Source of the DNA: Heterodontus francisci
Lineage: Eukaryota
Direction: 5' to 3'
DNA: 64,000 bases
Assembly: GCF_036365525.1 (NCBI RefSeq)
Contig: NC_090409.1
Location: 39,442,437 to 39,506,436, forward strand
Part shown: piece by piece, positions 2,385 through 63,564 of the stretch
Layout of the letters: each line of letters starts with the position of its first letter
Position numbering within the stretch: the stretch's first letter is position 1
The notes under the pieces: model-generated
Told to the model about the DNA's origin: nothing
Seen by the model: the letters and a program-made list of their open reading frames with translations, nothing else
Databases searched by the model: none
Made by a program: the position numbers and the translations under genes

Positions 2385-5300
2385 TTAGTGCTGGACAGCC
2401 CCGTTCCCCAGAAGGTTTTGTTCTCCAGCTGCTCCATTCTGATGCTCAGGTGCTGTTGTGAAACATGGGACCTTGTGACCTAAACAAGTCACCCCTGTCA
2501 AAGGGACGACATGAGATGCTTCATTTTGATTGATGCTGTGATGCTTTTGAACACAATTCCTGGGAGAAAAAAAACAGCAGAGTTCAGGTTACATTAAAAG
2601 AATCCAACACTTTGTACAAGTGTGTAAAGGAACTGTTCAGGAGCACAGACCGATTAAATTACACTCAACACCCTGGGCACCAATGGCAGCTGGAAAATGG
2701 GTCACAGGAGCTGCACGGTGATGGAGCACAGAGTGTAGAGGAGAGGAGGCTGATAAAGGAGGCAATGGGCAAGAGCTGGACACTCCACAGGACCTGTGCT
2801 GACCGAGGCACCAGACCAATAGAAAAATGACAGCTCACCTCAACATTGGAGATTAAAAAGAATTGACGAGGATCTCGGTTAACACTGAGCTGAAGATGAT
2901 GGGGATCAGATCAGACAGGAGGAGGCTGGGAATGTCTGTACTCTCCAGACTGATCCTGAATTATTGAGAGGAGTCACAGATGGACAGGATATTCCCTGAT
3001 GTGATCAAACCCGACCCAGCAGTGACCAAACAGGCTGACGGAGGCAGAAATATTGTGATGGGGAAAAAAGAGTCAGAGGACAGAGTTAGAGAATCTGCAA
3101 TAGTTTCCCCCCCACAACTGGCAGATGGGTAAGAGATGGGCAGGGAGATGTGGATGTTGAGGGAGGCAGAGAAATGCAACATATTTTATTGTCAGTGATC
3201 AAAAGCACTGATGGTCAGGTCAAGGGATGAGAGTGGACACAGGGTATATCACAGAAGCGGAGGTAGGTGGGATTTGAGTGATGGGGAGAATATGGAGTCA
3301 GAAGCACAGCTCAGGGTCTGATAGGACTCAGAGGTTGTGAACAGTCTGGTTCAGCCTCAGACAGTGGCCAGGGAGGGGGATGGAGTCAGTGACTGGGGAA
3401 CAGAGCAAGGATCAGAGGCTGGTGAAAAGTCAGAGGAGAGGGGACAAGGGGATTTTAGGTGTAGGCTGGTGAGTTGTTTGCTGCAGAGATTAGGCGAGTG
3501 TCTATTAACTGTGTGATAGAGGGAGCCGCACATTCCTGCTCTTCACCTTCAGTTCAGCAGCTGGAGGATGACAACAAGCTGGAAGTGACTGGATAATGCA
3601 GCATTGAAACATCCCACACAGCACAAAGTGTATCAGTGTACACAACATTTCCACAACACCAAATAGAATAAAACAAAACTAGAATTAATAATGGGAACTG
3701 TAGAACATTCCGGAACTCACCATCTTTGTCGCTTTTGGATTATGATAACTATAAATCCCTGAAGAAGAAGAAAAAGAATTCCGACAACCAATCCAACTAC
3801 TGCTCCAGTAGAGAGTCCAGGACCTAGAGACAGAATGAAGCGGTTAACAGACTGGGACACACTAACAAAACTAACAGCAGAGACCGTCAGCACCTAGTGT
3901 TTCAGAACCATCCTCAGTACAAACACAGTCCTGGTCAATTCAAATCATGGAGGGATGTGGGAGGTTAAATACCAATAATCTCACACACAAACCCACACAA
4001 ACACACACCAAGCCACCCACAGTTCCTTGCACACACTCACTGCCCCACAGTCTGATTGATACATGCTTTCCAATGGAGAGAACTGGACACTGACCAGCAG
4101 CAGCCTCCCTTCAAGTTGGGAAGGGAAAGGGAGTTTGGAGATGGAACAATAGCTTCCATGGGTGAGGGGTTGTTTTTTTTTTGAGGAGGGGGTGATGATG
4201 GTGGATTTAAAAGGAGGAACAGAGAATATCTGAAGAGAAAGAACCATTTAAAATACCGGCTCACGTGGTACCAGGAGGGAAAGTTGGATGATTAGTAGTT
4301 TAGCAGGAACAGGATCAAGGGGACAGGAGGTGGGTCTCATGGACAAGATGAGTTTAGAGAGGGAATGAGTGGAAATAGGAGAGAAACCAGAGAAAGATGA
4401 GAGTTCAGGGTTAGGGCAGGGGGGAGGATTATAGGAAGTTTGGCCAGGTGTGCTAGTGGAAGGGAGGGACACGGCAGAGGCAGCTGATTGGATGGTCTTG
4501 ATCGGACTGACAGAGCAGTCCATGAGCTCCTCGCACGTATTGTTGGACTTATTACCCATTCAGTGTGAGCATATGTAAAATCTAAAAACACAGGCAGTAG
4601 TTTAGAAACAGATTTACCTGGTACAGGTGTGTTCAGTACAGGTGTGTTCAGTACAGGTGGGCAATTGCGCTCTGAAGAAAACATCATGTGTTTAGTATTG
4701 TGTGTGATGGTAGACAGGCAATTGTTAACACCTGGAGAACTAATACATAGTTTACAACAAAAATGCATTTCTTTAATGTACAAAATACCAGCAAGGAAAG
4801 TGTTCCAACCGTGGCTAACGAAAAAAATCAAGGATTGTATTAGACCAAAGGAATTATTAGATGAAGGAAGGGCAGTGGATGATATCCATATGGACTTCAG
4901 CAAAGCCTTTGACAAGGTCCCACATGGCAGCCTGGTACAAAAGGTGAAGTCACACGGGATCAGAGGTGAGCTGGCAAGATGGACACAGAACTGGCTTGGT
5001 GACAGAAGACAGAGGGTATCAGTGGAAGGGTGTTTTTCTGAATGGAGAGATGTGACTAGTGGTGTTCCGCAGGGATCAGTGCTGGGACCTTTGCTGTTTG
5101 TAGTATATATAAATGATTTGGAGGAAAATGTAGCTGGTCTGATTAGTAAGTTTGGGGACGACACAAAGGTTGGTGGAGTTGCGGATAGTGATGAGGATTG
5201 TCAGAGGATACAGCAGGATATAGATCGGTTGGAGACTTGGGCGGAGAAATGGCAGATGGAGTTTAATCCGGACAAATGTGAGGTAATGCATTTTGGAAGG

Positions 5301-8300: not shown

Positions 8301-11300
8301 GTAGCACGTTTCTGGAGAGTGAGAGCAGCTTGATAGCACCGTTAACTCCTTCCATCACCCAGTTTGGCAGCTCTGTCCTTCAGGGCTCAGCCAGCTCGGT
8401 CAGTGGTGGTATTACCGAGTGACCCTTGGTGATGGACAGTGAAGTCCCCACTCGGTACATTCTGTGTCCTTGTTACCCTCAGTGCTTCCTCCAAATGGTG
8501 TTCAACATGGAGGAAAACTGATTCATCAGCTGAGGGAGGGCAGTAGGTGGGAATCAGCAGGAGGTGTCCAGGCCCATGTTTGACCTGAAGCTGTGAGATT
8601 TCCTGGGGTTCAGAGTCAATGTTGAGGAGTCTTGGGGTCACTCCCTCCTGACTGTATACCACTGTGTCCCCACCTCTGGTGGGTCTGTCCTGCCAGTGGG
8701 ACAGTACATACCCAGGGATGGTGATAGAGGAGACTGGGATGTAGGGTTGATTCTGTGAGTATGACTGGAGTCACATATACACCAGACCGGGAGGGACATT
8801 AGTGAACCAGTTGGGTTTTACAACAATCCAACAGCTTCATGGTCACTTTTATTGGGACCAACTTTATATTTCCAGATTTATTTTAAACTGAATTTAAATT
8901 CTGAAACTGCTATGGTGGGATTTGAACTCGTGTTTTCGGGATTATTTTTTTTTCATTCATTCATGGGATGTGGGCGTCGCTGGCCAGGCCAGCATTTATT
9001 GCCCATCCCTAATTGTCCTTGAGAAGGTGGTGGTGAGCTGCCTTCTTGAACCGCAGCAGTCCATGTGGGGTAGGTACACCCACAGTGCTGTTAGGAAGGG
9101 AGTTCCAGGATTTTGACCCAGCGACAGTGAAGGAACGGCGATATAGTTCCAAGTCAGGATGGTGTGTGGCTTGGAGGGGAACTTGTAAGTGGTGCTGTTC
9201 CCATGTATTTGCTGCCCTTGTCCTTATAGTTGGTAGAGGTCGCGGGTTTGGAAGGTGCTGTCTCAGGAGCCTTGGTGCATTGCTGCAGTGCATCTTGTAG
9301 ATGGTACACACTGCTGCCACTGTGCGTCGGTGGTGGAGGGAGTGAATGTTTGTAGATGGGGTGCCAATCAAGCGGGCTGCTTTGTCCTGGATGGTGTCAA
9401 ACTTCTTGAGTGTTGTTGGAGCAAGTGGAGAGTATTCCATCACACTCCTGACTTGTGCCTTGTAGATGATGGACAAGCTTTGTGGAGTCAGGAGGGGAGT
9501 TACTCGCCTCAGGATTCCCAGCCTCTGACTTGCTCTTGTAGCCACGGTATTTATATGGCTACTCCAGTTCAGTGTCTGGTCAATGGTAACCCCCAGGATG
9601 TTGATAGTGGGGGATTCTGCAATGGTAATGCTGTTGAATGTCAAGGGGAGATGGTTAGATTCTCTCTTGTTGGAGATGGTCATTGCCTGGCACTTGTGTG
9701 GCGCAAATGTTATTTGTCACTTCTCAGCCCAAGCCTGGATATTGTCCAGGTCTTGCTGCATTTCTACACGGACTGCTTCAGTATCTGAGGAGTCACGAAT
9801 GGTGCTGAACATTGTGCAATCAACAGCGAACATCCCCACTTCTGACCTTATGATTGAAGGAAGGTCATTGATGAAGCAGCTGAAAATGGTTGGGCCCAAG
9901 ACACTACTCTGAGGAACCCCTGCAGTGATGTCCTGGAGCTCAGATGATTGACCTCCAACAACCACAACCATCTTGCTTTGTGCTAGGTATGACTCCAGCC
10001 AGCAGAGGGTTTTCCTCCTGATTCCCATTGACCTCAGTTTTGCGAGGGTTCCTTGATGCCATACTCGGTCAAATGCTGCCTTGATGTCAAGGGCAGTCAC
10101 TCTCACCTCACCTCTGGATTACTAGTCTAGTAACATAACCACTGCACTACCGTACCCATAAAATCAGAGTAAATGCAGAATACCTGAAACAGAAACTTCT
10201 CACCTGTTACAGAGAGATCGACATCTTGATGAAAGACAACATCTGCCCTCTTGTAAAACTGACACACATACTTGTACTGGTCTGACTGCCTGAGGTCAGA
10301 GATCATAACTGACCAGTTGCCTTGTTCCAGTTGATCTTTGAACAGATTTGTTCTGTTTCTGAACCGTGGGTCTTGTAGAGTCAAATCATCATTTCCATTG
10401 GCAAACTTGTGCAAAATTCCATTCCTGAATATCCACCAAATTACCTGGAAATCAGAGACCGGGACATTCTCTTTGTAGATACAGGGCAGCACAACCTGCT
10501 CCCCAAGGAACCCAGAAACTGGGACAGACGAGTAATCTGGAAAAGATTGAAAGTATTTATCTACAGATATAACCTCCCTGCTGGTACATTCCATCCCAAG
10601 CTCCACATGGTTACACTGCGATGCTTGATTTACAAGAAGCACTGATCAGTAACTCACTGCTTTCATTTCTGTGGGAAGGTTAAAGGTCAGGCATTAAGGG
10701 CCTTCAACTAAAACCAGCTTGTGCTGGATATTTGTATCCACAGAGCAGCTGGACAGCACTTTGAATCGTGTGTTTCCCATTGTACACATGCTGGGAGAAC
10801 ACAAAAAAAGAGTTCCGAGGAAGGGTCACTGACCCGAAACGTTAACTCTGCTTCTCTTTCCACAGATGCTGCCAGACCTGCTGAGTGATTCCAGCATTTC
10901 TTGTTTTTATTTCAGGATATTAGTCACCCTGCCCACCTCCCCCCTTTGGGAGAACAATGACAGACCAGTGAACTGGCAGTGAGATCCCCAAACTACCACT
11001 GGATTTGGGACTGAGGTTTACAGACTCACCCAGGCTTCAACACTGAACCAACTAATCCGAGCTCTGCTGAAATGTGAGAGCAGTCACAGCGTTTACCTGA
11101 AACAGCAGCAACAGCATTTAGCAGCAGCAGCAGGAGGAGGAGTTTCTGTAAGTTGGGTCCCTGCAACAAGAAAACACAGTTACCCCCCTTTACCACAGTT
11201 TCTTGCTGCTCATGTCCATTTCTGAGCCGGGACAGGACACAGTCCATGGTCCCGCTCCCCATTACTGACCCTCCTCCCTCCCGGCTCTGAGACACATTGA

Positions 11301-11479
11301 GACCGGGAGCAGCCCTGACACAGTCCATGGTCCCTCTCCCCATTACTGACCCCCCTCCCTCCCGGCTCTCAGACACATTGAGACCGGGAGCAGCCCTGAC
11401 ACAGTCCATGGTCCCTCTCCCCATTACTGACCCCCCGGGTGTGAGACACTGACAATACCTGCTGTGTTTTTCTATCCAT
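2385..11479 (-). CDS. Single-IgV B7/butyrophilin-like membrane protein, copy A; exons 11459-11479, 11097-11160, 10204-10536, 3721-3823, 2385-2559 (231 aa)
   Basis: All introns GT-AG with matching phases 0/1/1/2. MDRKTQQ|GPNLQKLLLLLLLLNAVAAVS|DYSSVPVSGFLGEQVVLPC..W..QDPRFRNRTNLFKDQLEQGNWSVMISDLRQSDQYKYVC..|GPGLSTGAVVGLVVGILFLLLQGFIVIIIQKRQR|WNCVQKHH..NGAVQH*. Same structure in four paralogs. Confidence 0.85.
4250..4520 (-). mobile_element. L2-type LINE fragment (copy near 35510-35780)
   Basis: Peptide LSKLILSMRPTSCPLDPVPAKLL typical of L2 ORF2 just before the RT. Confidence 0.6.
4850..6066 (+). mobile_element. 5'-truncated CR1 (HER1-like) LINE, RT region plus 3' tail
   Basis: [43 protein letters not shown]; one in-frame stop; tail gggccgaatggcctgttcctgtgctgta..(ctttgtt)n. 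Confidence 0.93.
6067..7960 (+). mobile_element. Older degraded CR1 LINE
   Basis: Frameshifted peptides [37 protein letters not shown]. Confidence 0.9.
8385..8945 (-). mobile_element. 5' part of a tRNA-headed LINE (APE endonuclease remnant); head continues at 10113-10155
   Basis: Peptide LLLIPTYCPPSADES..GDFTVHH resembles APE; paralogs at 22320-22745, 39630-40456, 59213-59830. Confidence 0.65.
8946..10112 (-). mobile_element. 5'-truncated CR1/L2-group LINE (RT) inserted in the element above
   Basis: ALDIKAAFDRVWH, AGVPQSSVLGP, IYKAQVRSVMEY; (tgaa)n/poly-A tail; empty site in copies B and D. Confidence 0.9.
10204..10536 (-). CDS. IgV exon of copy A (phase 1-1, 333 nt)
   Basis: B-strand Cys, C-strand Trp, D-x3-Y-x-C motif, B7/BTN-like FRNRT-LF-DQL-QGN-S segment; ttccag acceptor and gtgaga donor. 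Confidence 0.93.
10802..10912. mobile_element. Penelope-like terminal-repeat fragment
   Basis: gaagggtcactgacccgaaacgttaactctgct matches 25990-26050 in reverse; absent from the paralogous introns. Confidence 0.6.
11235..11436. repeat. 81-bp intron-1 repeat, about 2.4 units (copy A)
   Basis: Reverse complement of the 54521-56740 unit. Confidence 0.9.
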
Positions 11480-11660
11480 TGCCCTGATCCTGGATCATTC
11501 CCTCCCGGACACAGGAGACTGGGAATCTGCCGCTGGGTCAGACAGTGAATATTGAAACTAACTGAGCTGCTGCTGAATCTTTACAAACAGTGAAAATGAC
11601 GGGAATCAGCCACGAAAACCTGGATCAGATTTTAAATAAACCATTTCCTGGCGCGCACGG

Positions 11661-13915: not shown

Positions 13916-14039
13916 CGCCTCCTCCTGTGCTGTGACAGAGAGCCAGCACAGACAGGACGGGCCGAATGGCCTCCTCCTCTGCTCTCACCATTCTCTCATT
14001 CCATTCACTTCAACCCCTTCTCCCTCCAACGGATTCTGC

Positions 14040-18655: not shown

Positions 18656-21600
18656 TTAGTGCTGGACAGCCCCGTTCCCCAGAAGGTTTTGTTCTCCAGC
18701 TGCTCCATTCTGATGCTCAGGTGCTGTTGTGAAACATGGGACCTTGTGACCTGAACAAGTCACCCCTGTCAAAGGGACGACATTAGATGCTTCATTTTGA
18801 TTGATGCTGTGATGATTTTGAACACAATTCCTGGGAGAGAAAAAACAGCAGAGTTCAGGTTACATTAAAAGAATCCAACACTTTGTACAAGTGTGTAAAG
18901 GAGCTGTTCAGGAACACAGACCGATTAAATTACACTCAACATCCTGGGCACCAATGGCAGCTGGAAAATGGGTCACAGGAGCTGCACGGTGATGGAGCAC
19001 AGAGTGTAGAGGAGAGGAGGCTTATAGAGGAGGCAATGGGCAAGAGCTGGACACTCCACAGGACCTGTGCTGACCGAGGCACCAGACCAATAGAAAAATG
19101 ACAGCTCACCTCAACATTGGAGATTAAGAAGAATTGATGAGGATCTCGGTTAACACTGAGCTGAATATGATGGGGATCAGATCAGACAGGAGGAGGCTGG
19201 GAATGTCTGTACTCTGCAGACTGATCCTGAATTATTGAGAGGAGTCACAGATGGACAGGTATTCCCTGATGTGATCAAACCCGACCCAGCAGTGACCAAA
19301 CAGGCTGACGGAAACAGAAATATTGTGATGGGGGAGAGTCAGAGGACAGAGTTAGAGAGTCTGCAATAATTCCCCCTCCCCACTGGCAGGTGGGTAAGAG
19401 GTGGGCAGGGAGATGTGGATGTTGAGGGAGACAGAGAAATGCAACATACCCTTGTTAGTGATTAAAACCACTGATGGCCGGGTCACAGGGGGTGATTTGA
19501 AAAATGCAATCTCTATTTGCGCTTAATCAACAACATGCATTTATGTTGCACCTTGATCATCCCAAGGTGCTTCACAGGAGCAATTATCAAACAGAATGTG
19601 TGCACCAAGATATTTGGGCTGGTGATCAAAAGCTCGGATATAGATGTAGGTTTTCAGGTGTGTCTGAAAGGAGGAGAGACAGAGAGGGACAGAGAGGTTT
19701 GGGGATAGAATTCTAGAACTTAGGGCTCAGGCAGCTAAAGGCACAGCCGCCAATGGTGGAGTGATGGAAAACAGGGGGGTGCAAGAGGCCAGAATTGGAG
19801 CAGCACAGAGATCAGGGAGGAGATTAGAGATAGGGAGGGGTGAGGCAATGGAGGGATTTGAACAGGAGGATGAATGTAGGTCAATGAGAACAGGAGTGAT
19901 GGGTAAATGGGACTTGGTGTGAGTTAGGATACGGGGCAGCAGAATTTTAGATGAGCTCAAGTTTACGGAGGGTGCAAGGTGGAATTGGCCGGGGGAACAT
20001 TGGAATAGTCGAGTCCAAAAATAACAAAGGCACGGATGAGGGTTTCAGGAGATGGGCTGAGGCGGGAGTTTCAGCAGCAGATGGGGAGAGACAGGGACTG
20101 AAATCACACAGGGGAATATCACAGGAGTAGAGGTAGGAGATCTCAGTGATGGAAACGATACAGTGTCGGAAGCTCAGCTCAGGGTCTGATAGGACTTCAA
20201 GGTTGTGAACAGTCTGGTTCAGCCTCAGACAGTGGCCAGGGAGGGGGATGGAGTCAGTGGCTGGGGAACAGAGCAAGGATCAGAGGCTGGTGAAAAGTCA
20301 GAGGAGAGGGGACAAGGTTATTTTAGGTGTAGGCTGGTGAGTTGTTTGCTGCAGAGATTAGGCGAGTGTCTATTAACTGTGTGATTGAGGGAGCCGCACA
20401 TTCCTGCTCTTCACCTTCAGTTCAGCAGCTAGAGGATGACAACAAGCTGGAAGTGACTGGATAATGCAGCATTGAAACATCCCACACAGCACAAAGTGTA
20501 TCAGTGCACACAACATTTCCACAACACCAAATATAATAAAACAAAACTAGAATTAACAATGGGAACTGCAGAACATTCCAGAACTCACCATCTTTGTTGC
20601 TTTCCGATTACGAGAATAAAACCCAGAATTATGCAAACAAGAACAAGAATTATGCAAACAAGAACAAGAATTGCGATGACCAATCCAACTACTGCTCCAG
20701 TAGAGGGTCCAGGACCTAGAGACAGAATGAAGCTGTTAACAGACTGGGACACACTAACAACACTAACAAAACTAACAGCAGAGACAGTCAGCACCTAGTG
20801 TTTCAGAACCATCCCCAGTGCAAACACATCCCTGGTCAATTCTAGTCCTGGAGGAATGTGGGAGGTCAGATATCAATAATCTCACACACACACATCCCCC
20901 CACAATGTGATCGATACATGCTTTCCAATGGAGATAACTGGACACTGACCAGCAGCAGCTGTAAATCTGAGTTCTTTTTGCCTTCAGTCTGGTTCAGTAA
21001 ATATACCGAGTCGGATGTGTCGGGAAAATCAATTACTTTATTTGCGCATTTAGCCGGCTGACTTACTCTAATGCAACGACACTGACTCCACCCAGAGTCT
21101 GTCTGGTCCACTAGAGTAAGTGAAGTTTTTTTGATACAGGTACTACTGTTTATACATTAAGATTCATGCTGCACCCCCTTGTTTAACCAATCAGTGCGAT
21201 ACAATTCGACTTCACCCACGTGGTGACATGCAGTACATCTGTTACTGAGGTTACAATACACTCTATTCTCCATACATACTTGTTACTAATAAAATATTGT
21301 TTTGTACCAGCAAGATAAAAGAAAGCGGACAAGCAAGCTAATTAGCAAGAGCATAGGAATCATCAATAATCATTCTAGTCTCACTCCCTACATGGATCAT
21401 GAGTCTGTCTCTACCTTGTGACAAGTAATTGCGGAGCATCCTGCTATCTCTATTAGGTTTACATTCCTGAGTGTTTCGTGCAGTCTGCAGCTACATCAAG
21501 TAGTGGCAGCTCACGAAGATAAGAGGGGCCTAGCACTCCTTATCACTCACACAGGGATGGACATCATTTGATTCACAGAGTCCATTTGTTCCAAACCACA

Positions 21601-24600
21601 GGGAGTCACACAATCAGACCATAAAGAACAGATGTCCTTGCAATTACCAGTGTCGGCTAGTCTTTACAGTCTCACACGCTCTGCCTTTACTTTTAACTAT
21701 TTCATTGTGGTTTCTGCCACTTAAAATCAAAGCTCAGCAGAGCGACTATTCCTAACTTGGCTATATTTCCCATGAAGCATAGTGCCATGCCTTTCTGCTC
21801 ACTTCCACACAGCCTCCCTTCAATTAAACCCAACAGCTCGCTGAAATGGAGCGGGAATTTTAAAATAATTTGCCGGTTTGGAGAACCATGGGATTGGGTG
21901 GAACACGGTTTATACGTGTATCAATATTACTCCTCATTGACTTAATACTGAGGACTCCTGGGGTCACTCCCACCTGACTGTACACCACAAGAGCTAAAAG
22001 CACATGCAGTAGTTTAGAAACAGATTTACCTGGTACAGGTGTGTTCGGTACAGGTGTGTTCGGTACAGGTGTACGAGCTCGCTCTAAAGAAAACATCATG
22101 TGTTTAGTACTGTGTGTGAAACAAACTGTAGAAATGTTCAAAGACTATAGGGCTGTGGGGAAACACATCCCGGGAGAAACGAGACTCGGGAAAACTGATC
22201 AGGAAGGATCAGGAACAGGGTCGGCAGAGTGAAAAATGGTGCTATGGGCCCCACTTTCTGCACCCCAACATCTGGAGACAGATGTAGCACATTTCTGGAG
22301 AGTGAGAGCAGCTTGATAGCACCGTGGGTTTGCCTTTGCTGTGTCCGAATTCGATGTCTGGGTCACAGCCAGTGGTCCGTTCAGTTTTATTCTTGTTTTT
22401 CTTTCTAGTGGTTTGATACAAACTGATTGAAGTGGCCGAGCAGGTCAGAGGGCAGTTAAAAGGCAACCAGGTTAATGTGTGACTGGTGTCACATATCGAC
22501 CAGACCGGGTAAGGATGGCAGATTTCCTTCCCGAGAGGGACATCAGTGAACCAGTTGGGTTTTACAACAATCCAACAGCTTCATGGTCACTTTTATTGGG
22601 ACCAACTTTATATTTCCAGATTTATTTTAAACTGAATTTAAATTCTGAAAGTGCCATGGTGGGATTTGAACTCACATTCTCTGGATTATTAGTCCAGGCC
22701 TCTGGATTACTAGTCTAGTAACATCACCACTGCATTACCGTACCCATAAAATCAGAGAGTAAATGCAGAATACCTGAAACAGAAACCTCTCACCTGTTAC
22801 AAAGAGATGAACATCTTGATGAAAGACTGGAGTCTCCCTCTGTTGAATCTCACACCGATACTCATTCTGGTCTGACTGCCTGAGGTCAGAGATCATGAGT
22901 GACCAGTTGCCTTGTTCCAGTTGATCTTTGAACAGGTTTGTTCTGTTTCTGAACTGTGGGTCTTGTAGTGTCAAATCATCGTTCCCATCGATAAATCTGT
23001 GTAAAATTCCACGATTGAATATCCACCAAATTACCTGTAAATCAGAGACCGGGACATTCTCTTTCTGGATACAGGGCAGCACAACCTGCTCCCCAAGGAA
23101 TCCAGAAACTGAGACAGGCATGTAACCTGGAAAAGATTGAAAGTATTTATCCACAGATATAACCTCCCTGCTGGTACATTCCATCCCAAGCTCCACATGG
23201 TTACACTGCGATGCTTGATTTACAAGAAGCACTGATCAGTAACTCACTGCTTTCATTTCTGTGGGAAGGTTAAAGGTCAGGCATTAAGGGCCTTCAACTA
23301 AAACCAGCTTGTGCTGGATATTTGTATCCAGAGCAGCTGGACAGCACTTTGAATCGTGTGTTTCCCATTGTACACATGCTGGGAAAACACATCAGGATAT
23401 TGGTCACCCTGCCCACCTCCCCCCTTTGGGAGAACAATGACAGACTGGGGGGGGGCACAATGTGAGGTGGAGCTCAGGAGCAGAAAACTGACCCTGAAAT
23501 GTAAAGACAGGAACGGGTGGGGGAGGGGGTACCAGAGGATGTGGAAAGGGCTTTGGACAGGTTGGGGGGACAATGATGGACGAGTATACTGTGTAGGGGG
23601 TGAGGCAGCACCTGATGGTCTGAAAGGGGCCGAGGTAATGTGGATCCTCACCTCCCTCCACCACTAACCTGTCAGACCTTGCTCCTCACCCCAATACGGC
23701 CAGACTCTGCCCCCTCCCAGGACCCAAAACACAATCCCCAGTCCTGATGACCCTACTCCCCATGCTCAGAGGCAATTCCCAGTTCTATTTGATCCAGGAC
23801 TGTCCCAGACTCCTGATCCCAGTGCTCAGGACCCCATCCCAGTACCACTGGATCCCAGACACCCATCCCAGTGTCACCGAGTGTTGCTCAGTGTCCAGAT
23901 TCCACTGTTCACATCACAGGGGTTAATCTGAAGACATTAACTGCCTTCATTTCAGGTCTCATGATCATTATGTGTAATGTGAACCGACTGTGTCCACTCC
24001 CTCAATGGGCCCACTCACAGTGAACACAGCACCTTAAAGCAAGATAAATTCCTGACAAAATGAACACTATTCCCCAGTAATATACACATTACTGATTTCA
24101 GTCCCAGACACCCAGACAAATGTTCTTTCCAGGAGACAGCTAACTGCAGTCTGTATAAATTCACAAGGTTAGCACCATCCAGGAAGATCAATCCTGATAT
24201 AATCCATGTCACCAGCAGCCCCGAGCTCTGCTGAAATGAGAGAGCAGTCACAGCGTTTACCTGAAACAGCAGCAACAGCATTTAGCAGCAGCAGCAGGAG
24301 GAGGAGTTTCTGTAAGTTGGGTCCCTGCAACAAGAAAACACAGTTACCCCCCTTTACCACAGTTTCTTGCTGCTCATGTCCATTTCTGAACCGGGACAGG
24401 ACACAGTCCATGGTCCCTCTCCCCATTACTGACCCTCCCTCCCTCCCGGCTCTGAGACACTGAGACCGGGAGCATCCCTGACACAGTCCATGGTCCCTCT
24501 CCCCATTACTGACCCCCCTCCCTCCCGGCTCTGAGACACATTGAGACCGGGAGCAGCCCTGACACAGTCCATGGTCCCTCTCCCCATTACTGACCCCCCG

Positions 24601-24642
24601 GGTGTGAGACACTGACAATACCTGCTGTGTTTTTCTATCCAT
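18656..24642 (-). CDS. Single-IgV B7/butyrophilin-like membrane protein, copy B; exons 24622-24642, 24261-24324, 22794-23126, 20589-20715, 18656-18830 (239 aa)
   Basis: Paralogous exons with the same splice sites and phases, no stops; TM GPGPSTGAVVGLVIAILVLVCIILVLVCIILGFILVIGKQQR. Confidence 0.85.
19520..20270 (-). mobile_element. L2-type LINE remnants in intron 4 of B (shorter version near 2860-3420, 34130-34680, 62560-63130)
   Basis: RILTHTKSHLPITPVLIDLH and LRLNQTVHNLEVLSDPELSF resemble the L2 ORF2 C-terminus. Confidence 0.65.
20960..21809. mobile_element. Solo LTR in intron 3 of B
   Basis: TG..CA termini, CAGC TSD; empty site cagcagcagcctccct in the other copies. Confidence 0.8.
22794..23126 (-). 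CDS. IgV exon of copy B
   Basis: Within ORF 22735-23232; V-set motifs; F-G region YRCEIQQRETPVF. Confidence 0.93.
24400..24600. repeat. 81-bp intron-1 repeat, about 2.4 units (copy B)
   Basis: Same unit as in A and D. Confidence 0.9.
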
Positions 24643-46249: not shown

Positions 46250-46375
46250 GCCATTACTGACCCCCCCGAGTGTGAGACACTGACAGTACCTGAAACCCCT
46301 TTTCTATCGTCAAGGCCTCGATCATCCCCTCCCGGAGACAGGGGAGCTGCTGCTGCTCAGCCGGAGGAGTCAGAC
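46250..46375 (-). pseudogene. Relic of exon 1/intron 1 start of the same gene family, ATG lost
   Basis: Minus strand gacgatagaaaaggggtttcag|gtactgtcagtgtctcacac versus atggatagaaaagcacagcag|gtattgtcagtgtctcacac. Confidence 0.65.
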
Positions 46376-48077: not shown

Positions 48078-48420
48078 AGATGTTAAAGTCCCTTATTTTC
48101 CCTAGCCCTCATGCACACACCACACATCCATTCAAAAACTGGTTAACCGGGGGAGCAAAAAGGAGTTTGGTTTACAGCTGTTTCATAGGAATGAAAAGAA
48201 CAATAAAAAAAAAACGTTGTCATGATCTGGAAGGAAGATCTTTGGTTTGGCGAGGTGAACCAAAGTCGAATAGTTGGATGCCACTCGAAGTCTTTCCAGG
48301 TGAGGATGAGCCGTCGATGATGGGTAGGCTTTCAAAGAACCTCAACAAAAGAAGGCTTTATATAAGGCTTTCCATCAGGTATGCAGCATGAAGGCTGTTT
48401 GGTCTTACAGCAGCAGTAAA

Positions 48421-54476: not shown

Positions 54477-57400
54477 ATGGATAGAAAAGCACAGCAGGTA
54501 TTGTCAGTGTCTCACACCCGGGGGGTCAGTCATGGGGAGAGGGACCATGGACTGTTTCAGGGCTGCTCCCGGTCTCAATGTGTCTCAGAGCCGGGAGGGA
54601 GGGGAGTCAGTAATGTGGAGAGGGACCATGGACTGTGTCAGGGCTGCTCCCGGTCTCAATGTGTCTCAGAGCCGGGAGGGAGGGGGGTCAGTAATGGGGA
54701 GAGGGACCATGGACTGTGTCAGGGCTGCTCCCGGTCTCAATGTGTCTCAGAGCCGGGAGGGAGGAGGGTCAGTAATGGGGAGAGGGACCATGGACTGTGT
54801 CAGGGCTGCTCCCGGTCTCAATGTGTCTCAGAGCCGGGAGGGAGGGAGGTCAGTAATGGGGAGAGGGACCATGGACTGTGTCAGGGCTGCTCCCGGTCTC
54901 AATGTGTCTCAGAGCCGGGAGGGAGGGGGGTCAGTAATGGGGAGAGGGACCATGGACTGTGTCAGGGCTGCTCCCGGTCTCAATGTGTCTCAGAGCCGGG
55001 AGGGAGGAGGGTCAGTAATGGGGAGAGGGACCATGGACTGTGTCAGGGCTGCTCCCGGTCTCAATGTGTCTCAGAGCCGGGAGGGAGGGAGGTCAGTAAT
55101 GGGGAGAGGGACCATGGACTGTGTCAGGGCTGCTCCCGGTCTCAATGTGTCTCAGAGCCGGGAGGGAGGGGGGTCAGTAATGGGGAGAGGGACCATGGAC
55201 TGTTTCAGGGCTGCTCCCGGTCTCAATGTGTCTCAGAGCCGGGAGGGAGGGGAGTCAGTAATGTGGAGAGGGATCATGGACTGTGTCAGGGCTGCTCCCG
55301 GTCTCAATGTGTCTCAGAGCCGGGAGGGAGGAGGGTCAGTAATGGGGAGAGGGACCATGGACTGTGTCAGGGCTGCTCCCGATCTCAATGTGTCTCAGAG
55401 CCGGGAGGGAGGGGGGTCAGTAATGGGGAGAGGGACCATGGACTGTGTCAGGGCTGCTCCCGGTCTCAATGTGTCTCAGAGCCGGGAGGGAGGGGGGTCA
55501 GTAATGGGGAGAGGGACCATGGACTGTGTCAGGGCTGCTCCCGATCTCAATGTGTCTCAGAGCCGGGAGGGAGGGGGGTCAGTAATGGGGAGAGGGACCA
55601 TGGACTGTGTCAGGGCTGCTCCCGGTCTCAATGTGTCTCAGAGCCGGGAGGGAGGGAGGTCAGTAATGGGGAGAGGGACCATGGACTGTGTCAGGGCTGC
55701 TCCCGGTCTCAATGTGTCTCAGAGCCGGGAGGGAGGGGGGTCAGTAATGGGGAGAGGGACCATGGACTGTTTCAGGGCTGCTCCCGGTCTCAATGTGTCT
55801 CAGAGCCGGGAGGGAGGGGAGTCAGTAATGTGGAGAGGGACCATGGACTGTGTCAGGGCTGCTCCCGGTCTCAATGTGTCTCAGAGCCGGGAGGGAGGGG
55901 GGTCAGTAATGGGGAGAGGGACCATGGACTGTGTCAGGGCTGCTCCCGGTCTCAATGTGTCTCAGAGCCGGGAGGGAGGGGGGTCAGTAATGGGGAGAGG
56001 GACCATGGACTGTGTCAGGGCTGCTCCCGATCTCAATGTGTCTCAGAGCCGGGAGGGAGGGGGTCAGTAATGGGGAGAGGGACCATGGACTGTGTCAGGG
56101 TTGCTCCCGGTCTCAATGTGTCTCAGAGCCGGGAGGGAGGGGGGTCAGTAATGGGGAGTGGGACCATGGACTGTGTCAGGGCTGCTCCTGGTCTCAATGT
56201 GTCTCAGAGCCGGGAGGGAGGTCAGTCATGGGGGGAGGGACCATGGACTGTGTCAGGGCTGCTCCCGGTCTCAATGTGTCTCAGAGCCGGGAGGGAGGGG
56301 GGTCAGTAATGGGGAGAGGGACCATGGACTGTGTCAGGGCTGCTCCCGGTCTCAATGTGTCTCAGAGCCGGGAGGGAGGGAGGTCAGTAATGGGGAGTGG
56401 GACCATGGACTGTGTCAGGGCTGCTCCCGGTCTCAATGTGTCTCAGAGCCGGGAGGGAGGGGGGTCAGTAATGGGGAGAGGGACCATGGACTGTGTCAGG
56501 GCTGCTCCCGGTCTCAATGTGTCTCAGAGCCGGGAGGGAGGGGGGTCAGTAATGGGGAGAGGGACCATGGACTGTGTCAGGGCTGCTCCCGGTCTCCATG
56601 TGTCTCAGAGCCGGGAGGGAGGGGAGTCAGTAATGGGGAGAGGGACCATGGACTGTGTCAGGGCTGCTCCCGGTCTCAATGTGTCTCAGAGCCGGGAGGG
56701 AGGAGGGTCAGTAATGGGGAGAGGGACCATGGACTGTGTCCTGTCCCGGTTCAGAAATGGACATGAGCAGCAAGAAACTGTGGTAAAGGGGGGTAACTGT
56801 GTTTTCTTGTTGCAGGGACCCAACTTACAGAAACTCCTCCTCCTGCTGCTGCTGCTAAATGCTGTTGCTGCTGTTTCAGGTAAACGCTGTGACTGCTCTC
56901 ACATTTCAGCAGAGCTCGGGGCTGCTGGTGATATGGATTATATCAGGATTGATCTTCCTGGATGGTGTTAACCTTGTGAATTTATACAGACTGCAGTTAG
57001 CTATCTCCTGGAAAGAACATTTGTCTGGGTGTCTGGGACTGAAATCAGTAATGTGTATATTACTGGGGAATCTTCTTCTTCTTTGGCCTCCTTGTCTCGA
57101 GAGACAATGGGTAAGCGCCTAGAGGTGGTCAGTGGTGTCAGTCGCTGTGAGGCAACTATGGAGTGACCTCTCCATGGCGCATGCCTGGGCGAATGTATGG
57201 AGGTTGAGAGTTGCCCAAGCGTCAAAACCCCCCTCTCGGCCTTTCTGGTGGGGTCCAAAGGAGTGCAGAGCACGACGTTTGGCACCGGTAGTATTCATTA
57301 TATCAGGAATTCATCTTGCTTTAAGGTGCTGTGTTCACTGTGAGTGGGCCCATTGAGGGAGTGGACACAGTCGGTTCACATTACACATAATGATCATGAG

Positions 57401-60400
57401 ACCTGAAAGGAAGGCAGTTAATGTCTTCAGATTAACCCCTGTGATGTGAACAGTGGAATCTGGACACTGAGTGTTAGTGAGAATGAATCTAGAAGAATCA
57501 CTCGACACTTGGGTCTGCTCCAATGTCAAACAGTTTATTGAGTTACGCCAGCAGGGAGCAGGTCACTGGGCTGTCCAGATGCCCCTCCACTGAACAATGA
57601 AAAATCATCAATACTTATACATTTTCAAACAGTTACTCAGCCCATCCTTTCTGGACATGGTCCAATCATAATGATTACAGATTCTCTCCATTGATTATTA
57701 AAGACCAATAGAAGTGGTTACCAGGTGTGAAAGGGGCTGCAGGACCAACCCATGGACAGATAGGGGATTACTCATGATGTTTTCCATTCCTTTCTAGTCC
57801 CCATCCTTGGTTCTCCTGTACGCACACCACCTTATCTTAACCTTGTTACAGGCTGGTATCTTTGTCAGCATTCCACATGGACATCTGCTCTCCATTGAAT
57901 AAGTCTTTGAATTTATGTTACTCAGTTCCTGTGTGGAATGTGGTCAAGTTGGCTAAACCCCATGATGCCTTGCAAACTCTTCATTGTTCACTAAAATTAC
58001 GTTACGAGTTACTCAAATAACATTTAAACAGGATGTTCTTTTCTGCAGGTGCCTCTGCGCTTGGGAATACCCGTCAACACTGAGCAACACTCGGTGACAC
58101 TGGGATGGGGTCCTGAGCACTGGGATCAGGAGTCTGGGACAGTCCTGGATCAAATAGAACTGGGAATTGCCTCTGAGCATGGGGAGTAGGGTCATCAGGA
58201 TTGGGGATTGTGTTTTGGGTCCTGGGAGGGGGCAGAGTCTGGCCGTATTGGGGTGAGGAGCAAGGTCTGACAGGTTAGTGGTGGAGGGAGATGAGGATCC
58301 ACATTGCCTCGGCCCCTTTCAGACCATCAGGTGCTGCCTCACCCCCTACACAGTGTACTCATCCGTCATTGTCCCCCCAACCTGTCCAAAGCCCTTTCCA
58401 CATCCTCGGGTACCCCCTCCCCCACCCGTTCCTGTCTTTACATTTCAGGGTCAGTTTTCTGCTCCTGAGCTCCACCTCACATTGTGCCCCCCCCAGTCTG
58501 TCATTGTTCTCCCAAAGGGGGGAGGTGGGCAGGGTGACCAATATCCTGATGTGTTCTCCCAGCATGTGTACAATGGGAAACACACGATTCGAAGTGCTGT
58601 CCAGCTGCTCTGTGGATACAAATATCCAGCACAAGCTGGTTTTAGTTGAAGGCCCTTAATGCCTGACCTTTAACCTTCCCACAGAAATGAAAGCAGTGAG
58701 TTACTGATCAGTGCTTCTTGTAAATCAAGCATCGCAGTGTAACCATGTGGAGCTTGGGATGGAATGTACCAGCAGGGAGGTTATATCTGTGGATAAATAC
58801 TTTCAATCTTTTCCAGGTTACTTGCCTGTCCCAGTTTCTGGGTTCCTTGGGGAGCAGGTTGTGCTGCCCTGTATCTACAAAGGGAATGTCCCAGTCTCTG
58901 AGTTACAGCTAATTTGGTGGATATCCAATCGTGAAATTTTACACAGATTTATCGATGGGAACGATGACTTAATACAACAAGACCCACGGTTCAGAAACAG
59001 AACAAACCTGTTCAAAGATCAACTGGAGCAAGGCAACTGGTCACTAATGATCTCTGACCTCATGCAGTCAGACCAGAATGAGTATCAGTGTCAGATTTAC
59101 AAGAGGATCGGTGAGCACTATCAATGGCAACAAGCTGATTCAGTCCATCTCTCTGTAACAGGTGAGAGGTTTCTGTTTCAGGTATTCTGCATTTACTCTC
59201 TGATTTTATGAGTACGGTAGTGCAGTGGTTATGTTACTGGACTAGTAATCCAGAAGCCTGGACTAATAATCCAGAGAACGTGGCTTCAAATCCCACCATG
59301 GCACTTTCAGAATTGAAATTCAGTTTAAAATAAATCTGGAAATATAAAGTTGGTCCCAATAAAAGTGACCATGAAGCTGTTGGATTGTTGTAAAACCCAA
59401 CTGGTTCACTAATGTCCCTCTCGGGAAGGAAACCTGCCGTCCTTACCCGGTCTGGTCTATATGTGACTCCTGTCCCACATTAACCTGGTTAACTTTTAAC
59501 TGCCCTCTGATTTGCTCGGTTACTTCAATCAGTTTGTATCAAACCACTAGAAAGAAAAAACAGACTAAAACTGAACAGACCACTGGCTGTGACCCAGACA
59601 TCAAATCAGGACACAGCAAAGGCAAACCCAGCCCAGTTGACACTGCAAAGTCCCCCTCGCTGACATCTGGAAATTGGTCTCCATGTTAGGCGAGCTGTGT
59701 GACAGTCATACTCACAGAATCAACCCTCCAACCCAGACTCCTCTATCACCATCCCTGGGTATGTCTTGTCCCACTGGCAGGACAGACCCACCCGAGGTGG
59801 GGGCACAGTGGTATCCAGTCAGGAGGGAGTTTTTTATTCTTTTGCTGCATTTGCTGACAATGCATCCACTCGGTGTCGCAATACTTGCACATGTGAAAAT
59901 GCAGCCTGATCCACTGAAACGTCGCTGTCTGTGACCTTTTTGGCAGCTGCCAGTAATAAAGATGGCGACGCTCAATTTATCACAAAACAAATGAAACACA
60001 AATGCCCACAGTGGCTGTGATCACTGCCTCCATCACACCCCCAACAGTACCTCGCTCCCTCCTGCCATCACCACCTCCATCCCACCCCCAGCAATACCTC
60101 GCTCCCTCCTGCCATCGCCACCTCCATCAGTACCTCGCTCCCTCCTGACATCACTACCTCCATCCCACCCCCAGCAGTACCTCGCTCCCTCCTGCCTTCG
60201 CCACCTCCATCCCACCCCCAGCAGTACCTCGCTCCCTCCTGCCTTCGCCACCTCCATCCCACCCCCAGCAGTACCTCGCTCCCTCCTGCCATCGCCACCT
60301 CCATCCCACCCCCAGCAGTACTTCGCTCCCTCCTGACATCACTACCTCCATCCCACCCCCAGCAGTACCTCACTCCCTCCTGCCATCACCATCGCCATCC

Positions 60401-63400
60401 CACCCCCAACAGTACCTCGCTCCCTCCTGCCATCGCCACCTCCATCCCACCCCCAGCAGTACTTCGCTCCCTCCTGACATCACTACCTCCATCCCACCCC
60501 CAGCAGTACCTCGCTCCCTCCTGCCATCACCATCGCCATCCCACCCCCAACAGTACCTCGCTCCCTCCTGCCATCACCACCTCCATCCCACCCCCAGCAG
60601 TACTTCGCTCCCTCCTGACATCACTACCTCCATCCCACCCCCAGCAGTACCTCACTCCCTCCTGCCATCACCACCTCCATCCCACCCCCAGCAGTCCCTC
60701 GCTCCCTCCTGACATCGCCATCCCACCCCCAACAGTACCTCGCTCCCTCCTGCCATCGCCACCTCCATTCCACCCCCAGCAGTCCCTCGCTCCCTCCTGA
60801 CATCGCCATTCCACCCCCAACAGTACCTCGCTCCCTCTTGCCATCGCCACCTCCATCCCACCCCCAACAATACCTCGCTCCCTCCTGCCATCATTGCTGC
60901 CTACCGCAGCAGTCTACTCACCACTTGCTCCTGGCATCGCTGCTTCATTCCCTCTGCCATCCCTCTGCTCCCCTCCCCTGCTTATCTTTTCTGTCTCTGT
61001 GCGAGGAAGAAAGGCAGCAATCGCGGGACGGAGTGGGGAGGCTGGAGTGAATGGCCCACAGATAGGTGGAGGTGTGAAGCGTGGAGTGAGTAGGTGGGGG
61101 GGTGGGTGGTGGAGGGCGGAGATGAAGCGAGGCTGGGGGTGAGCGGTGAGCAGACATTGCAGTACACAATGATGTTTGAGCGTAGACATGAGTAAGTCCT
61201 GGTAAACCGGGTGCTGACGTAGACTGCACATGGGCAGCACTGTACGAACAGCAAGACTCTGATCTGCACATGTGTGAAGCTGGGAGCTTCTGATGTTGGC
61301 AGTGGGTTGCGTTGTCAGCAGTCACTTTGTTTTATTTTATTCATGTTAGTGGGATGTCTGCGTCACTGGCCAGGCCAGCATTTATTGCCCATCCCTAATT
61401 GCTGTTGAACTGAGTGGCTTGCTCGGCCATTTCAGAGGGCAGTTCAGAGTTAACCATATTGCTGTGAGTCTGGAGTTACGTGTAGGCCAGACCAGCAGAT
61501 TTCTTTCTCTAAAGGACATTCATGAACAAATCGACTGTTTTCATGGTCACCATTATTCTAGCTTTTTATTTTAAATTACTGATTTTATTAATTAAATTCA
61601 AATTTCACCATCTGCTGTGGGTGGGATTCAAACCCCTGTCCCCAGAGCATTCACCTGGGCTCTGGAGTACTAGTCCAGTAACAGTCCCACTACACCCCAC
61701 CGGTTCCCCATAGGCCCCAGGACTCCTCAGCATTGAAGTCAGTGGAAAGTAATACTGATCCCATTGTAAACCAGCGTTCCATCCAATCCTGTGGTTTACC
61801 CAAACAGCAAATTATTTTAAATTCCTGCTCTATTTCAGCGGGCTGTTGGGTTTAATTAAAGGGAGGCTGCTGCTGGTCAGGGTCTGGTTATCTCCATTGG
61901 AAACCATGTATTGATCACATTGTGGGTGTGTAAGAAAGTCGAGCTGTGGGGTGGCTTCCTGTGTCTGTGGCTGTTTATTGGTGTTTAATCTCCCACATCC
62001 CTCCAGGACTAGAATTGACCAGGGATGTGTTTGCACTGGGGATGGTTCTGAAACACTAGGTGCTGACAGTCTCTGCTGTTAGTTTTGTTAGTGTGTCCCA
62101 GTCTGTTAACGGCTTCATTCTGTCTCTAGGTCCTGGACCCTCTACTGGATTGGTAGTTGGATTGGTCATCGCAATTCTGGTTCTTGTTTGCATAATTCTT
62201 GTTCTTCTTTGCATAATTCTGGTTTTCATAATCCAAAACCGACAAAGATGGTGAGTTCCAGAATGATCTGCAGTTCCCATTGTTAATTCTAGTTTTGTTT
62301 TATTATATTTGGTGTTGTGGAAATGTTGTGTACACTGATACACTTTGTGCTGTGTAGGATGTTTCAATGCTGCATTATCCAGTCACTTCCAGCTTGTTGT
62401 CATCCTCTAGCTGCTGAACTGAAGGTGAAGAGCAGGAATGTGCGGCTCCCTCTATCACACAGTTAATAGACACTCGCCTAATCTCTGCAGCAAACAACTC
62501 ACCAGCCTACACCTAAAATCCCCTTGTCCCCTCTCCTCTGACTTTTCACCAGCCTCTGATCCTTGCTCTGTTCCCCAGTCACTGACTCCATCCCCTTCCC
62601 TGGCCACTGTCTGAGGCTGAACCAGACTGTTCACAACCTCGGAGTCCTATCAGACCCTGAGCTGAGCTTCTGACTCCATATTCTCCCATCACTCAAATCC
62701 CACCTACCTCCGCTTCTGTGATGTACCCTGTGTCCACTCTCATCCCTTGACCTGACCATCAGTGGTTTTGATCACTAACAATAAAATATGTTGCATTTCT
62801 CTGCCTCCCTCAACATCCACATCTCCCTGCCCATCTCTTGCCCATCTGCCAGTTGTGGGGGGGAAACTATTGCAGATTCTCTAACTCTGTCCTCTGACTC
62901 TTTTTTCCCCATCACAATATTTCTGCCTCCGTCAGCCTGTTTGGTCACTGCTGGGTCGGGTTTGATCACATCAGGGAATATCCTGTCCATCTGACTCCTC
63001 TCAATAATTCAGGATCAGTCTGGAGAGTCTGGACATTCCCAGCCTCCTCCTGTCTGATCTGATCCCCATCATCTTCAGCTCAGTGTTAACTGAGATCCTC
63101 ATCAATTCTTCTTAATCTCCAATGTTGAGGTGAGCTGTCATTTTTCTATTGGTCTGGTTCCTCGGTTAGCACAGGTCCTGTGGAGTGTCCAGCTCTTGCC
63201 CATTGCCTCCTCTCCTCTGCACTCTGTGCTCCATCACCGTGCAGCTCCTGTGACCCATTTTCCAGCTGCCATTGGGGCCCAGGAGGTTGAGTGTAATTTA
63301 ATCGGTCTGTGCTCCTGAACAGCTCCTTTACACACTTGTACAAAGTGTTGGATTCTTTTAATGTAACCTGAACTCTGCTGTTTTTTCCCTCCCAGGAAAG

Positions 63401-63564
63401 CGAACAAACACAACATCAATCACAATGAAGCATCTAATGTCATCCCTTTGACAGGGGTGACTTGTTTAGGTAGCAAGGTCCCATGTTTCACAACAGCACC
63501 TGAGCATCAGAATGGAGCAGCTGGAGAACAAAACCTTCTGGGGAACGGGGCTGTCCAGCACTAA
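54477..63564 (+). CDS. Single-IgV B7/butyrophilin-like membrane protein, copy D (inverted); exons 54477-54497, 56816-56879, 58817-59161, 62130-62250, 63396-63564 (239 aa)
   Basis: MDRKAQQ|gtattg..ttgcag|GPNLQKL8NAVAAVS|gtaaac..ttccag|V domain|gtgaga..tctag|TM|gtgagt..cccag|WKANKHNINHNEASNVIPLTGVTCLGSKVPCFTTAPEHQNGAAGEQNLLGNGAVQH*. Indels relative to the paralogs are all multiples of 3. Confidence 0.86.
54521..56740. repeat. 81-bp tandem repeat, about 27 units, in intron 1 of D
   Basis: 27-aa periodicity in the ORF track; bracketed by the donor at 54498 and the acceptor at 56815. Confidence 0.95.
57071..57290. mobile_element. Short D-specific insertion with a (CTT)n end, probable retroposon fragment
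   Basis: Absent from the matching intron of B. Confidence 0.45.
57472..58079. mobile_element. Solo LTR in intron 2 of D
   Basis: TGTT..AACA termini, CTGAG TSD; empty site in B near 23890. Confidence 0.8.
58817..59161 (+). CDS. IgV exon of copy D (345 nt, F-G loop 4 aa longer)
   Basis: Within ORF 58711-59211; YQCQIYKRIGEHYQWQQADSVHLSVT. Confidence 0.93.
59213..59830 (+). mobile_element. tRNA-headed LINE 5' part
   Basis: tagtgcagtgg A-box-like and ttcaaatccc B-box-like motifs running into an APE-like remnant. Confidence 0.62.
60030..60890. repeat. About 47-bp C-rich minisatellite, about 18 units, intron 3 of D
   Basis: ccatcccacccccagcagtacctcgctccctcctgccatcgccacct. Confidence 0.95.
61335..61705 (-). 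mobile_element. SINE with tRNA head and LINE-derived tail
   Basis: Head resembles 59213-59520; tail aattagggatgggcaataaatgctggcctggccag matches the LINE 3' end at 8980-9015. Confidence 0.72.

Follow-up and report, generated by a model that had tools for sequence, protein, structure and literature searches.

The B7 proteins (VTCN1, CD276, CD274) are of type I topology, with domain exons of phase 1, a V and a C domain of the immunoglobulin (Ig) superfamily and a short tail, and they are encoded by single-copy genes. The BTN and BTNL proteins belong to the same V-domain superfamily and have an IgV-IgC ectodomain, mostly with a B30.2 (PRY/SPRY) domain. MOG, also of this superfamily, has a single V domain, a transmembrane (TM) segment and a second hydrophobic segment. 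Chicken BG genes encode a single B7/BTN-like V and a TM segment, have variable V domains and lie in a tandem cluster that expands, contracts and recombines; their tail is a long heptad-repeat coiled coil made of many 21-nt exons. Sodium-channel beta subunits and MPZ also have the single V plus TM layout. BTNL proteins are germline-encoded ligands of gamma-delta T-cell receptors (TCRs). [quoted passage not shown] Here we analyse a window of 64,000 nt of the horn shark Heterodontus francisci (NC_090409.1, assembly GCF_036365525.1), which contains four genes, named g1 to g4, of a family whose members here encode a single V domain of B7 type.

By V domain, topology and exon phase the shark genes are like B7, and an IgC domain is what they lack: in its place is a Pro/Thr stalk, or nothing (g4). 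They differ from the single-copy B7 genes in forming a tandem multigene family, and a conserved family-specific tail and a soluble isoform that skips the TM exon are features of the shark genes. With BG they share the single V plus TM and the tandem cluster with variable V domains. Their tail is instead one exon of 169-175 nt, their V resembles CD276 and VTCN1 more closely than BTN or MOG, and we found no evidence of a common V-only descent. Unlike BTN and BTNL they have neither IgC nor B30.2, and the second hydrophobic segment of MOG is not in the shark tail. They are best called a shark-specific new subfamily of the B7 superfamily.

Four intact genes in a segmental duplication

Self-comparison of the window revealed a segmental duplication with a period of ~15-16 kb. 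Three copies have the same orientation (1-11.5 kb, 16.4-24.7 kb and 31.3-44.2 kb) and a fourth is inverted (54.4-64 kb). Copies 1 and 3 are 98.6% identical across 8.7 kb, and the remaining pairs 88-96%. Each copy has one long open stretch with Ig V-like sequence and one intact gene: g1 at 2385-11479 (-), g2 at 18656-24642 (-), g3 at 33659-44222 (-) and, inverted with respect to these, g4 at 54477-63564 (+). The first-pass annotation had placed four intact five-exon paralogs at 2385-63564, with conserved splice sites and only frame-preserving indels of 3-24 nt. The four paralogs are there, and the ends of that interval are the stop codons of g1 and g4. Exon borders are AG/GT throughout, and the indels between copies preserve the frame (+3 in the leader, +12 in V, -15 in the stalk, +18/+24 in TM, -6 in the tail). 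The count of five coding exons is right for g4, which has no stalk exon; g1-g3 have six, the leader being split in two. The coding lengths of g1-g4 sum to 750, 774, 738 and 720 nt, each divisible by 3, and the predicted product is a type I membrane glycoprotein of 239-257 aa.

The V exon lies at 10204..10536 in g1, 22794..23126 in g2 and 43003..43335 in g3 (all on the minus strand), with 333 nt each, and at 58817..59161 on the plus strand in g4, where a 12-nt insertion in the FG region brings it to 345 nt. The adjoining intron sequences are ...ttttccag and gtgag, and the introns on both sides are in phase 1. The domain has a Cys18-Cys91 pair, Trp33, and NRT and NWS sequons; Pfam assigns the g1 exon to V-set with an e-value of 1.9e-11. 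The stalk exon (39-54 nt) is Pro/Thr-rich, with the pattern (E)R..TPVPNTPVP, and is made of 15-nt repeats. It was found on the minus strand at 4618..4671 in g1 (54 nt, (E)RNCPPVLNTPVLNTPVP), 22030..22083 in g2 (54 nt, (E)RARTPVPNTPVPNTPVP) and 35881..35919 in g3 (39 nt, (E)RNCPPVLNTPVP). The resulting 13-18 aa include a Cys in g1 and g3 (ERNCPPVL...) and none in g2, so that disulfide-linked dimers could form for some paralogs only. No credible stalk exon was found in the 2968-nt V-TM intron of g4 with BLAST, with a pattern allowing 3 mismatches or with a scan for phase-1 open pieces between AG and GT; at the position syntenic to the stalk, the only alignment is to unrelated, SINE-like (short interspersed element) sequence. 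Since V and TM share phase 1, joining them directly in g4 keeps the reading frame.

The TM exon (103-127 nt) encodes one helix, a hydrophobic run of 20-30 residues with no charged residue. It lies at 3721..3823 (-) in g1 (103 nt, phase 1 to 2), 20589..20715 (-) in g2 (127 nt, with a 24-nt internal duplication), 34994..35096 (-) in g3 (103 nt) and 62130..62250 (+) in g4 (121 nt). The tail and stop codon occupy one exon of 169-175 nt: 2385..2559 (-) in g1 (57 aa, ending in ...TTAPEHQNGAAGEQNLLGNGAVQH), 18656..18830 (-) in g2, 33659..33833 (-) in g3, where it matches RefSeq, and 63396..63564 (+) in g4 (169 nt). The tail has 55-57 aa and no tyrosine. It therefore has none of the immunoreceptor tyrosine-based inhibitory, switch or activation motifs (ITIM, ITSM, ITAM). 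It showed no B30.2, no Pfam match and no recognised signalling or sorting motif, and by eye neither a second hydrophobic run nor a repeat. Three Cys are present in the tail, one directly after the TM segment (RW-NC), and the latter is a possible palmitoylation site.

A B7-type V domain without an IgC domain

We compared the V domain with known structures in three ways. A single V sequence, that of g1, searched against the PDB with phmmer matched CD276 (3.8e-14) and VTCN1 (2.4e-13) best, followed by MOG (1.8e-10), PD-L1 (~2e-8) and BTN3A (~1e-6). A family profile built from 39 members, used with hmmsearch against the PDB sequences, gave the same two leading matches (CD276 4.9e-20, VTCN1 2.7e-19), followed by PD-L1 (5e-14), SCN4B (2.8e-9, over V plus TM), MOG (1.6e-8), BTNL3 (3.9e-7), BTN1A1 (7.2e-7) and CD80 (1e-6). 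The AlphaFold2 model of the g1 V domain has a pLDDT (predicted local distance difference test) of 91, and its best Foldseek match is the IgV of B7-H4 (4gos), with a TM of 0.87, then PD-L1; no chain of SCNxB or MPZ is among the top matches listed. Within the shark domain, the motif RFRNRTNLFKDQLEQGNWS lines up with '...RGRT.LF.D....GNASL' of the B7 proteins. Identity to human V domains is only ~22-28%. These comparisons of sequence and modelled fold indicate that the V domain is of the B7 family proper (CD276, VTCN1, PD-L1) rather than of the BTN or MOG kind, to which the similarity is weaker.

The proteins could also be non-immune adhesion or auxiliary proteins of the MPZ, sodium-channel beta-subunit or MOG kind, merely duplicated in sharks. 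Some NCBI names do read 'sodium channel subunit beta-4-like' or 'myelin-oligodendrocyte glycoprotein-like', and the profile aligns to SCN4B over V plus TM and to MOG. CD276 and VTCN1 are matched at least 10 orders of magnitude more strongly than either. Furthermore, at least 11 clusters in one species, variability on one face of the V domain and exon-focused divergence (both described below) are unlike conserved channel or myelin subunits. We regard this explanation as quite improbable.

Pfam identified V-set or other Ig families only, and no B30.2, in four of the predicted RefSeq proteins (P0161, P0171, P0166 and P0210). The open stretches of the V-stalk and stalk-TM introns of g2 (710 and 1314 nt) gave no Ig match, and both the transcript joints and the RefSeq models run from V to stalk to TM without an IgC. 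The first-pass annotation had suggested a V-only protein with a B7/BTN signature and a tail unlike those of MOG and BG, a reading that an IgC exon within the gene would have undone. Such an exon is absent from these introns, transcripts and models, the only domain is V-set with CD276 and VTCN1 as top matches, and the tail is short, encoded by one exon and devoid of Pfam matches. The B7/BTN signature is right and can be narrowed: CD276, VTCN1 and PD-L1 are closer to the V than BTN or MOG are.

Transcripts and RefSeq models

We used transcript data from four runs, in which assembled contigs, guessed to be RNA, were compared with 5,861 bases of g2; such contigs show junctions and carry no strand, level or tissue information. 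The spliced reads called for by the first-pass annotation exist for g2 in the form of these spliced contigs. Their summed depth is ~1e5 on exons versus ~1e2 on introns. The joints have CT..AC ends, i.e., GT..AG on the minus strand, and connect leader and V (23124/24259), V and stalk (22083/22794), stalk and TM (20713/22028) and TM and tail (18829/20588), in agreement with the exons given above. Variant contigs are very numerous (2,149 in one run), which fits a multigene family. A further joint, 18829/22029, skips the TM exon, with a depth close to that of the TM-including joints in the contigs of organism A. The product is predicted to be a soluble form: after the skip, translation continues in the tail exon through 20 codons of a different frame (GIVFKIITASIKMKHLMSSL in g2), and reading of the sequences shows the same alternative frame open to the same TGA in g1 and g4.

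The genes are represented in RefSeq. In a protein search, the open stretch around the g1 V exon was a 100% match to the H. francisci protein P0161, 'myelin-oligodendrocyte glycoprotein-like isoform X2', and the exon peptides occur in order in P0161 (g1), P0166 (g2), P0164 (g3) and P0171 (g4), all named either 'myelin-oligodendrocyte glycoprotein-like' or 'V-set domain-containing T-cell activation inhibitor 1-like'. The models differ in the isoform they represent. P0161 includes the V exon (100% identical) and the TM exon of g1 and skips the stalk exon. P0166 skips the TM exon of g2 and has 177 aa, with the alternative-frame end GIVFKIITASIKMKHLMSSL. P0164 includes the V exon of g3 and has another first exon, 'MYLQK', which was not found in the window. 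P0171 uses a distant first exon for g4 and joins V directly to TM. The RefSeq annotation is independent support for a leader in two exons, a stalk that is optional and a soluble product.

The intron of ~260 nt before the V exon (10537-10800, 23127-23390, 43336-43600 and 58550-58816) is 98.8-99.6% identical in g1-g4. It is open in frame with the V exon, and its translation, ...EVISVDKYFQSFPG, is also found at the start of predicted proteins of the whale shark (P0186) and the basking shark (P0004). This suggests gene-prediction read-through, together with conservation of the pre-V intron sequence between shark orders.

The V exon diverges far more than its flanking introns

We aligned the DNA of g1-g4 (four copies only) and counted variable columns. 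They amount to 6 of 266 (2.3%) in the intron before the V exon, 73 of the 333 ungapped columns of the V exon (22%) and 6 of 68 (8.8%) after it. The contrast between the V exon and its flanking introns is significant (Fisher p = 1.8e-13), and the switch occurs at the acceptor site. By segment, the introns next to exons are 93-100% identical and the V exons 81-95%, and no segment diverges more than the TM exon. The second leader exon and its acceptor region are 100% identical. The TM and tail exons of g1 and g3 are identical and their V exons differ at 18 positions. Nei-Gojobori pairwise ratios of nonsynonymous to synonymous divergence (dN/dS) for the V exon are 0.37-1.0, with dS of 0.11-0.24.

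The variation is unevenly spread over the V domain. Among 10 horn-shark paralogs, 36 of 54 sites vary on the BC loop, C-C'-C'' and F-G, and 11 of 56 on the A, B, D and E strands, a front/back partition that was drawn after the data were seen. The block of the D-E strands is invariant, and the Ig Cys pair and Trp are kept in g1-g4. Segments are shuffled between paralogs: P0165 combines a g2-type FG loop with a g1-type C-C' region, which suggests patchwork conversion.

Redundant recent duplicates under relaxed constraint, drifting to pseudogenes, might give some of the same observations, with the exon/intron contrast as a by-product of gene conversion in the introns. Ratios of dN/dS of 0.7-1.0 between lineages, the near-identity of g1 and g3 and introns full of minisatellites and fragments of long interspersed elements (LINEs) speak for such drift. 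Yet all four genes have kept their frames, splice sites, Ig Cys pair, Trp and D-E strand block, every indel is a multiple of 3, transcript coverage is high and restricted to exons, and the whole architecture, tail included, is kept across shark orders. We consider drift very improbable, the least credible of the explanations discussed here.

The family in other sharks

A scan of 1.84 billion representative proteins returned relatives with one or two V domains at 56-70% identity. Look-ups traced these to sharks only, as predicted proteins that carry a wide range of unrelated names; teleost multi-V 'butyrophilin-like' proteins follow at 36-41% identity. The profile search gave 72 matches at E <= 1e-10, all from sharks except one unlabelled EukProt entry, in Heterodontus, Carcharodon, Cetorhinus, Rhincodon, Stegostoma, Chiloscyllium, Hemiscyllium, Scyliorhinus, Mustelus and Pristiophorus. 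Rays, chimaeras and bony fish gave no match at this threshold in what was a word-filtered profile search, so that their absence is suggestive only. Predicted relatives come from at least 11 shark species besides the horn shark. The same succession of leader, V, stalk, TM and tail is found in Carcharodon, Cetorhinus, Rhincodon, Stegostoma, Chiloscyllium, Hemiscyllium, Scyliorhinus and Mustelus, and Pristiophorus has related two-V proteins. The last ~22 residues of the tail are almost unchanged across shark orders and end in TTAPEHQ(D/N)GAAGEQNLLGNGAVQH.

At least 11 clusters of the family (at 90% identity) are on the same 44-Mb horn-shark scaffold, and one of them, P0210, is a two-V member with the same tail. 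In the maximum-likelihood tree the 10 proteins of the horn shark group in a single clade, with an SH-aLRT (Shimodaira-Hasegawa-like approximate likelihood-ratio test) support of 100, and the carpet sharks share several older lineages. This is the pattern of birth-and-death evolution, concerted evolution or both. The lineage-specific expansion anticipated by the first-pass annotation is borne out by the shark matches and this clade. Its remark that the family was possibly undescribed was right in one respect only: the genes are already in databases as RefSeq predictions, with their relatives in other sharks, and a full-text literature search found no publication or definition of this shark V-only family. 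RefSeq (Gnomon) has given its members at least 12 inconsistent names, including CD276 homolog, BTNL2, VTCN1-like, MOG-like, ICOS ligand-like, CD86-like, SCN4B-like, JAML, MXRA8-like, BTN1A1-like, 'uncharacterized' and PRDM7-like. Names such as MOG-like, SCN4B-like, CD86-like or PRDM7-like are misleading and should be unified.

A proposed role in immune recognition

We infer an immune role, as ligands or receptors. The best explanation, which we hold to be probable, is that g1-g4, which are transcribed recent tandem duplicates, encode cell-surface and shed B7-type V ligands, a germline-diversified recognition set. In the surface glycoproteins and their shed forms, a variable V face of B7 type would sit on a short stalk that can be O-glycosylated, and the GFCC'C'' face would be presented to a receptor on another cell, by analogy with the B7 and BTNL proteins and their CD28-family, NKp30 or gamma-delta TCR partners. 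Gene conversion or unequal exchange would homogenise the locus while selection would keep the V (and TM) exons different; this is suggested because the paralogs differ mainly on the GFCC'C'' face and have nearly identical flanking introns. Germline diversity would then come from paralogs, with birth and death within sharks, and the near-invariant tail would bind an intracellular partner.

A role as leukocyte receptors would place the family with germline-diversified innate sets such as the teleost NITRs or CD300/TREM, or with the V-only VISTA, sensing variable self or pathogen structures and signalling through the tail. A V-only multigene cluster with variable loops resembling complementarity-determining regions, a tail whose conservation across shark orders implies an intracellular partner and the existence of a soluble decoy isoform speak for such receptors. 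The tail, devoid of tyrosine and hence of ITIM, ITSM and ITAM, speaks against them, as do a TM segment with no charged residue for pairing with adaptors of the DAP12/FcRgamma type and a V domain nearest to ligand-side B7 proteins (CD276, VTCN1, PD-L1) and not to receptor-side families. We find receptors unlikely, and prefer ligands because the tail has no Tyr motif, the TM segment is uncharged and the V groups with ligand-side B7 proteins.

The ligand interpretation can be extended to a germline-diversified, shark-specific set of V-only B7-H3/H4-like ligands, abundantly transcribed, whose V and TM exons are kept different by selection while the rest is homogenised. Such a set might co-evolve with lymphocyte receptors (gamma-delta TCR, NKp30-like or CD28-like) as a counterpart of mammalian BTNL/Skint and chicken BG, possibly linked to the MHC. 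We hold this extended version to be less likely than not.

Several observations weigh against the ligand interpretation. The ratios of dN/dS over the whole V exon are not above 1, so positive selection is not proven, and synonymous divergence exceeds intron divergence. The exon/intron contrast comes from the DNA of four copies and could reflect conversion tracts ending at the exon border, or V lineages of greater age, rather than positive selection alone; homogenisation of the non-coding sequence with V exons that are exempt or older fits the data equally well. The partition into variable front and conserved back was made a posteriori. The transcript runs are coded contigs of guessed RNA origin. 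The apparent absence in rays and chimaeras depends on the word filter of the search. Finally, the tail has no recognised motif, which leaves its conservation unexplained.

With the ligand interpretation, the family is a concrete and clonable candidate for the germline-encoded ligands seen by shark T or natural killer cells, because it is large, apparently restricted to sharks, transcribed and variable on the binding face of B7. It also makes it possible to test whether V-only 'BG-like' families originated repeatedly.

The leader exons and intron 1

The leader is spread over two exons, one of 21 nt that holds the ATG (MDRKTQQ) and one of 64-67 nt (GPNLQKLLLLLLLLNAVAAVS). The former is common to g1-g4, with the sequence ATGGAT(A/G)GAAAA...CAG/GTATTG. 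It lies at 11459..11479 (-) in g1, where it encodes the seven codons of MDRKTQQ before the donor CAG/GTATTG and equals residues 1-7 of P0161, and at 24622..24642 (-) in g2 (MDRKTQQ, residues 1-7 of P0166), 44202..44222 (-) in g3 (MDGKALQ) and 54477..54497 (+) in g4 (MDRKAQQ). A good acceptor, ttgttgcag/GGACCC, is found 64-67 nt before the leader donor. The second exon, at 11097..11160 (-) in g1, carries the hydrophobic part of the signal peptide and a phase-1 donor, and is included in P0161, which reads MDRKTQQ-GPNLQK across the junction. Its counterparts are at 24261..24324 (-) in g2, where the transcript joint to V is the one at 23124/24259 (cut +2), at 43787..43853 (-) in g3 (67 nt, with one additional Leu codon) and at 56816..56879 (+) in g4 (residues 27-47 of P0171). 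One contig end, at 24329, runs on into ...CAATGGATGGAAAAGAGC, a sequence of the first exon, which supports the splice between the two.

An 81-bp minisatellite therefore lies in intron 1 and does not carry the start codon. It is present in ~29 copies in g4 (54439-56839), where it nearly fills the intron (54498..56815, +), in ~3 copies each in g1 (11161-11458) and g2 (24325-24621), and is absent from g3. Two other leader models were ruled out. A start at the in-frame ATG inside the repeat (MDCVLSRF...) is contradicted by g3, which has no such ATG, by the shared 21-nt exon, by the acceptor and by P0161; an intron of 33 nt within the leader is too short. Each 81-bp unit has an in-frame ACCATGG, which invites a wrong call of the start codon, the real ATG being in the 21-nt exon upstream. 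Because the minisatellite is open in several frames, it gives rise to spurious open reading frames (ORFs) of 319-610 aa.

Alternative first exons, repeats and mobile elements

Two alternative first coding exons with good donors were found in the 10-kb spacer between g3 and the inverted g4, and both are used in RefSeq isoforms. One, at 48222..48299 (+), encodes MIWKEDLWFGEVNQSRIVGCHSKSFQ, has the donor CAG/GTGAG and is used with g4 in P0171. The other, at 46290..46325 (-) upstream of g3, encodes MIEALTIEKGFQ, has the donor CAG/GTACT, and its peptide also starts P0162 and P0163, the products of sister genes. These exons are head to head, 1.9 kb apart, and may share a bidirectional promoter.

The window contains several other repeats. 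Some 9-11 copies of an 89-bp tandem repeat (11561-12572) begin ~80 nt upstream of the start-codon exon of g1 and likely occupy its promoter or 5' untranslated region. The other genes have unrelated sequence at this position, and the 150 nt before the first exon are only 45-89% alike across genes. Further minisatellites are found at 59977-60869 (47-bp unit, in the V-TM intron of g4, the intron with no stalk exon), at 44291-45116 (40 bp, just upstream of the first exon of g3) and at 27637-28306 (43 bp, between g2 and g3). LINE-type reverse-transcriptase fragments at 4629-7877, 9009-10106, 13011-13991, 36124-38321, 40751-42747 and 52181-53818 sit between the genes and, in g1 and g3, within the long intron that separates V from stalk. 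Two of them were tested and matched Pfam RVT_1 (1.5e-26 and 9.3e-22). These fragments are the source of most of the long ORFs in the window.

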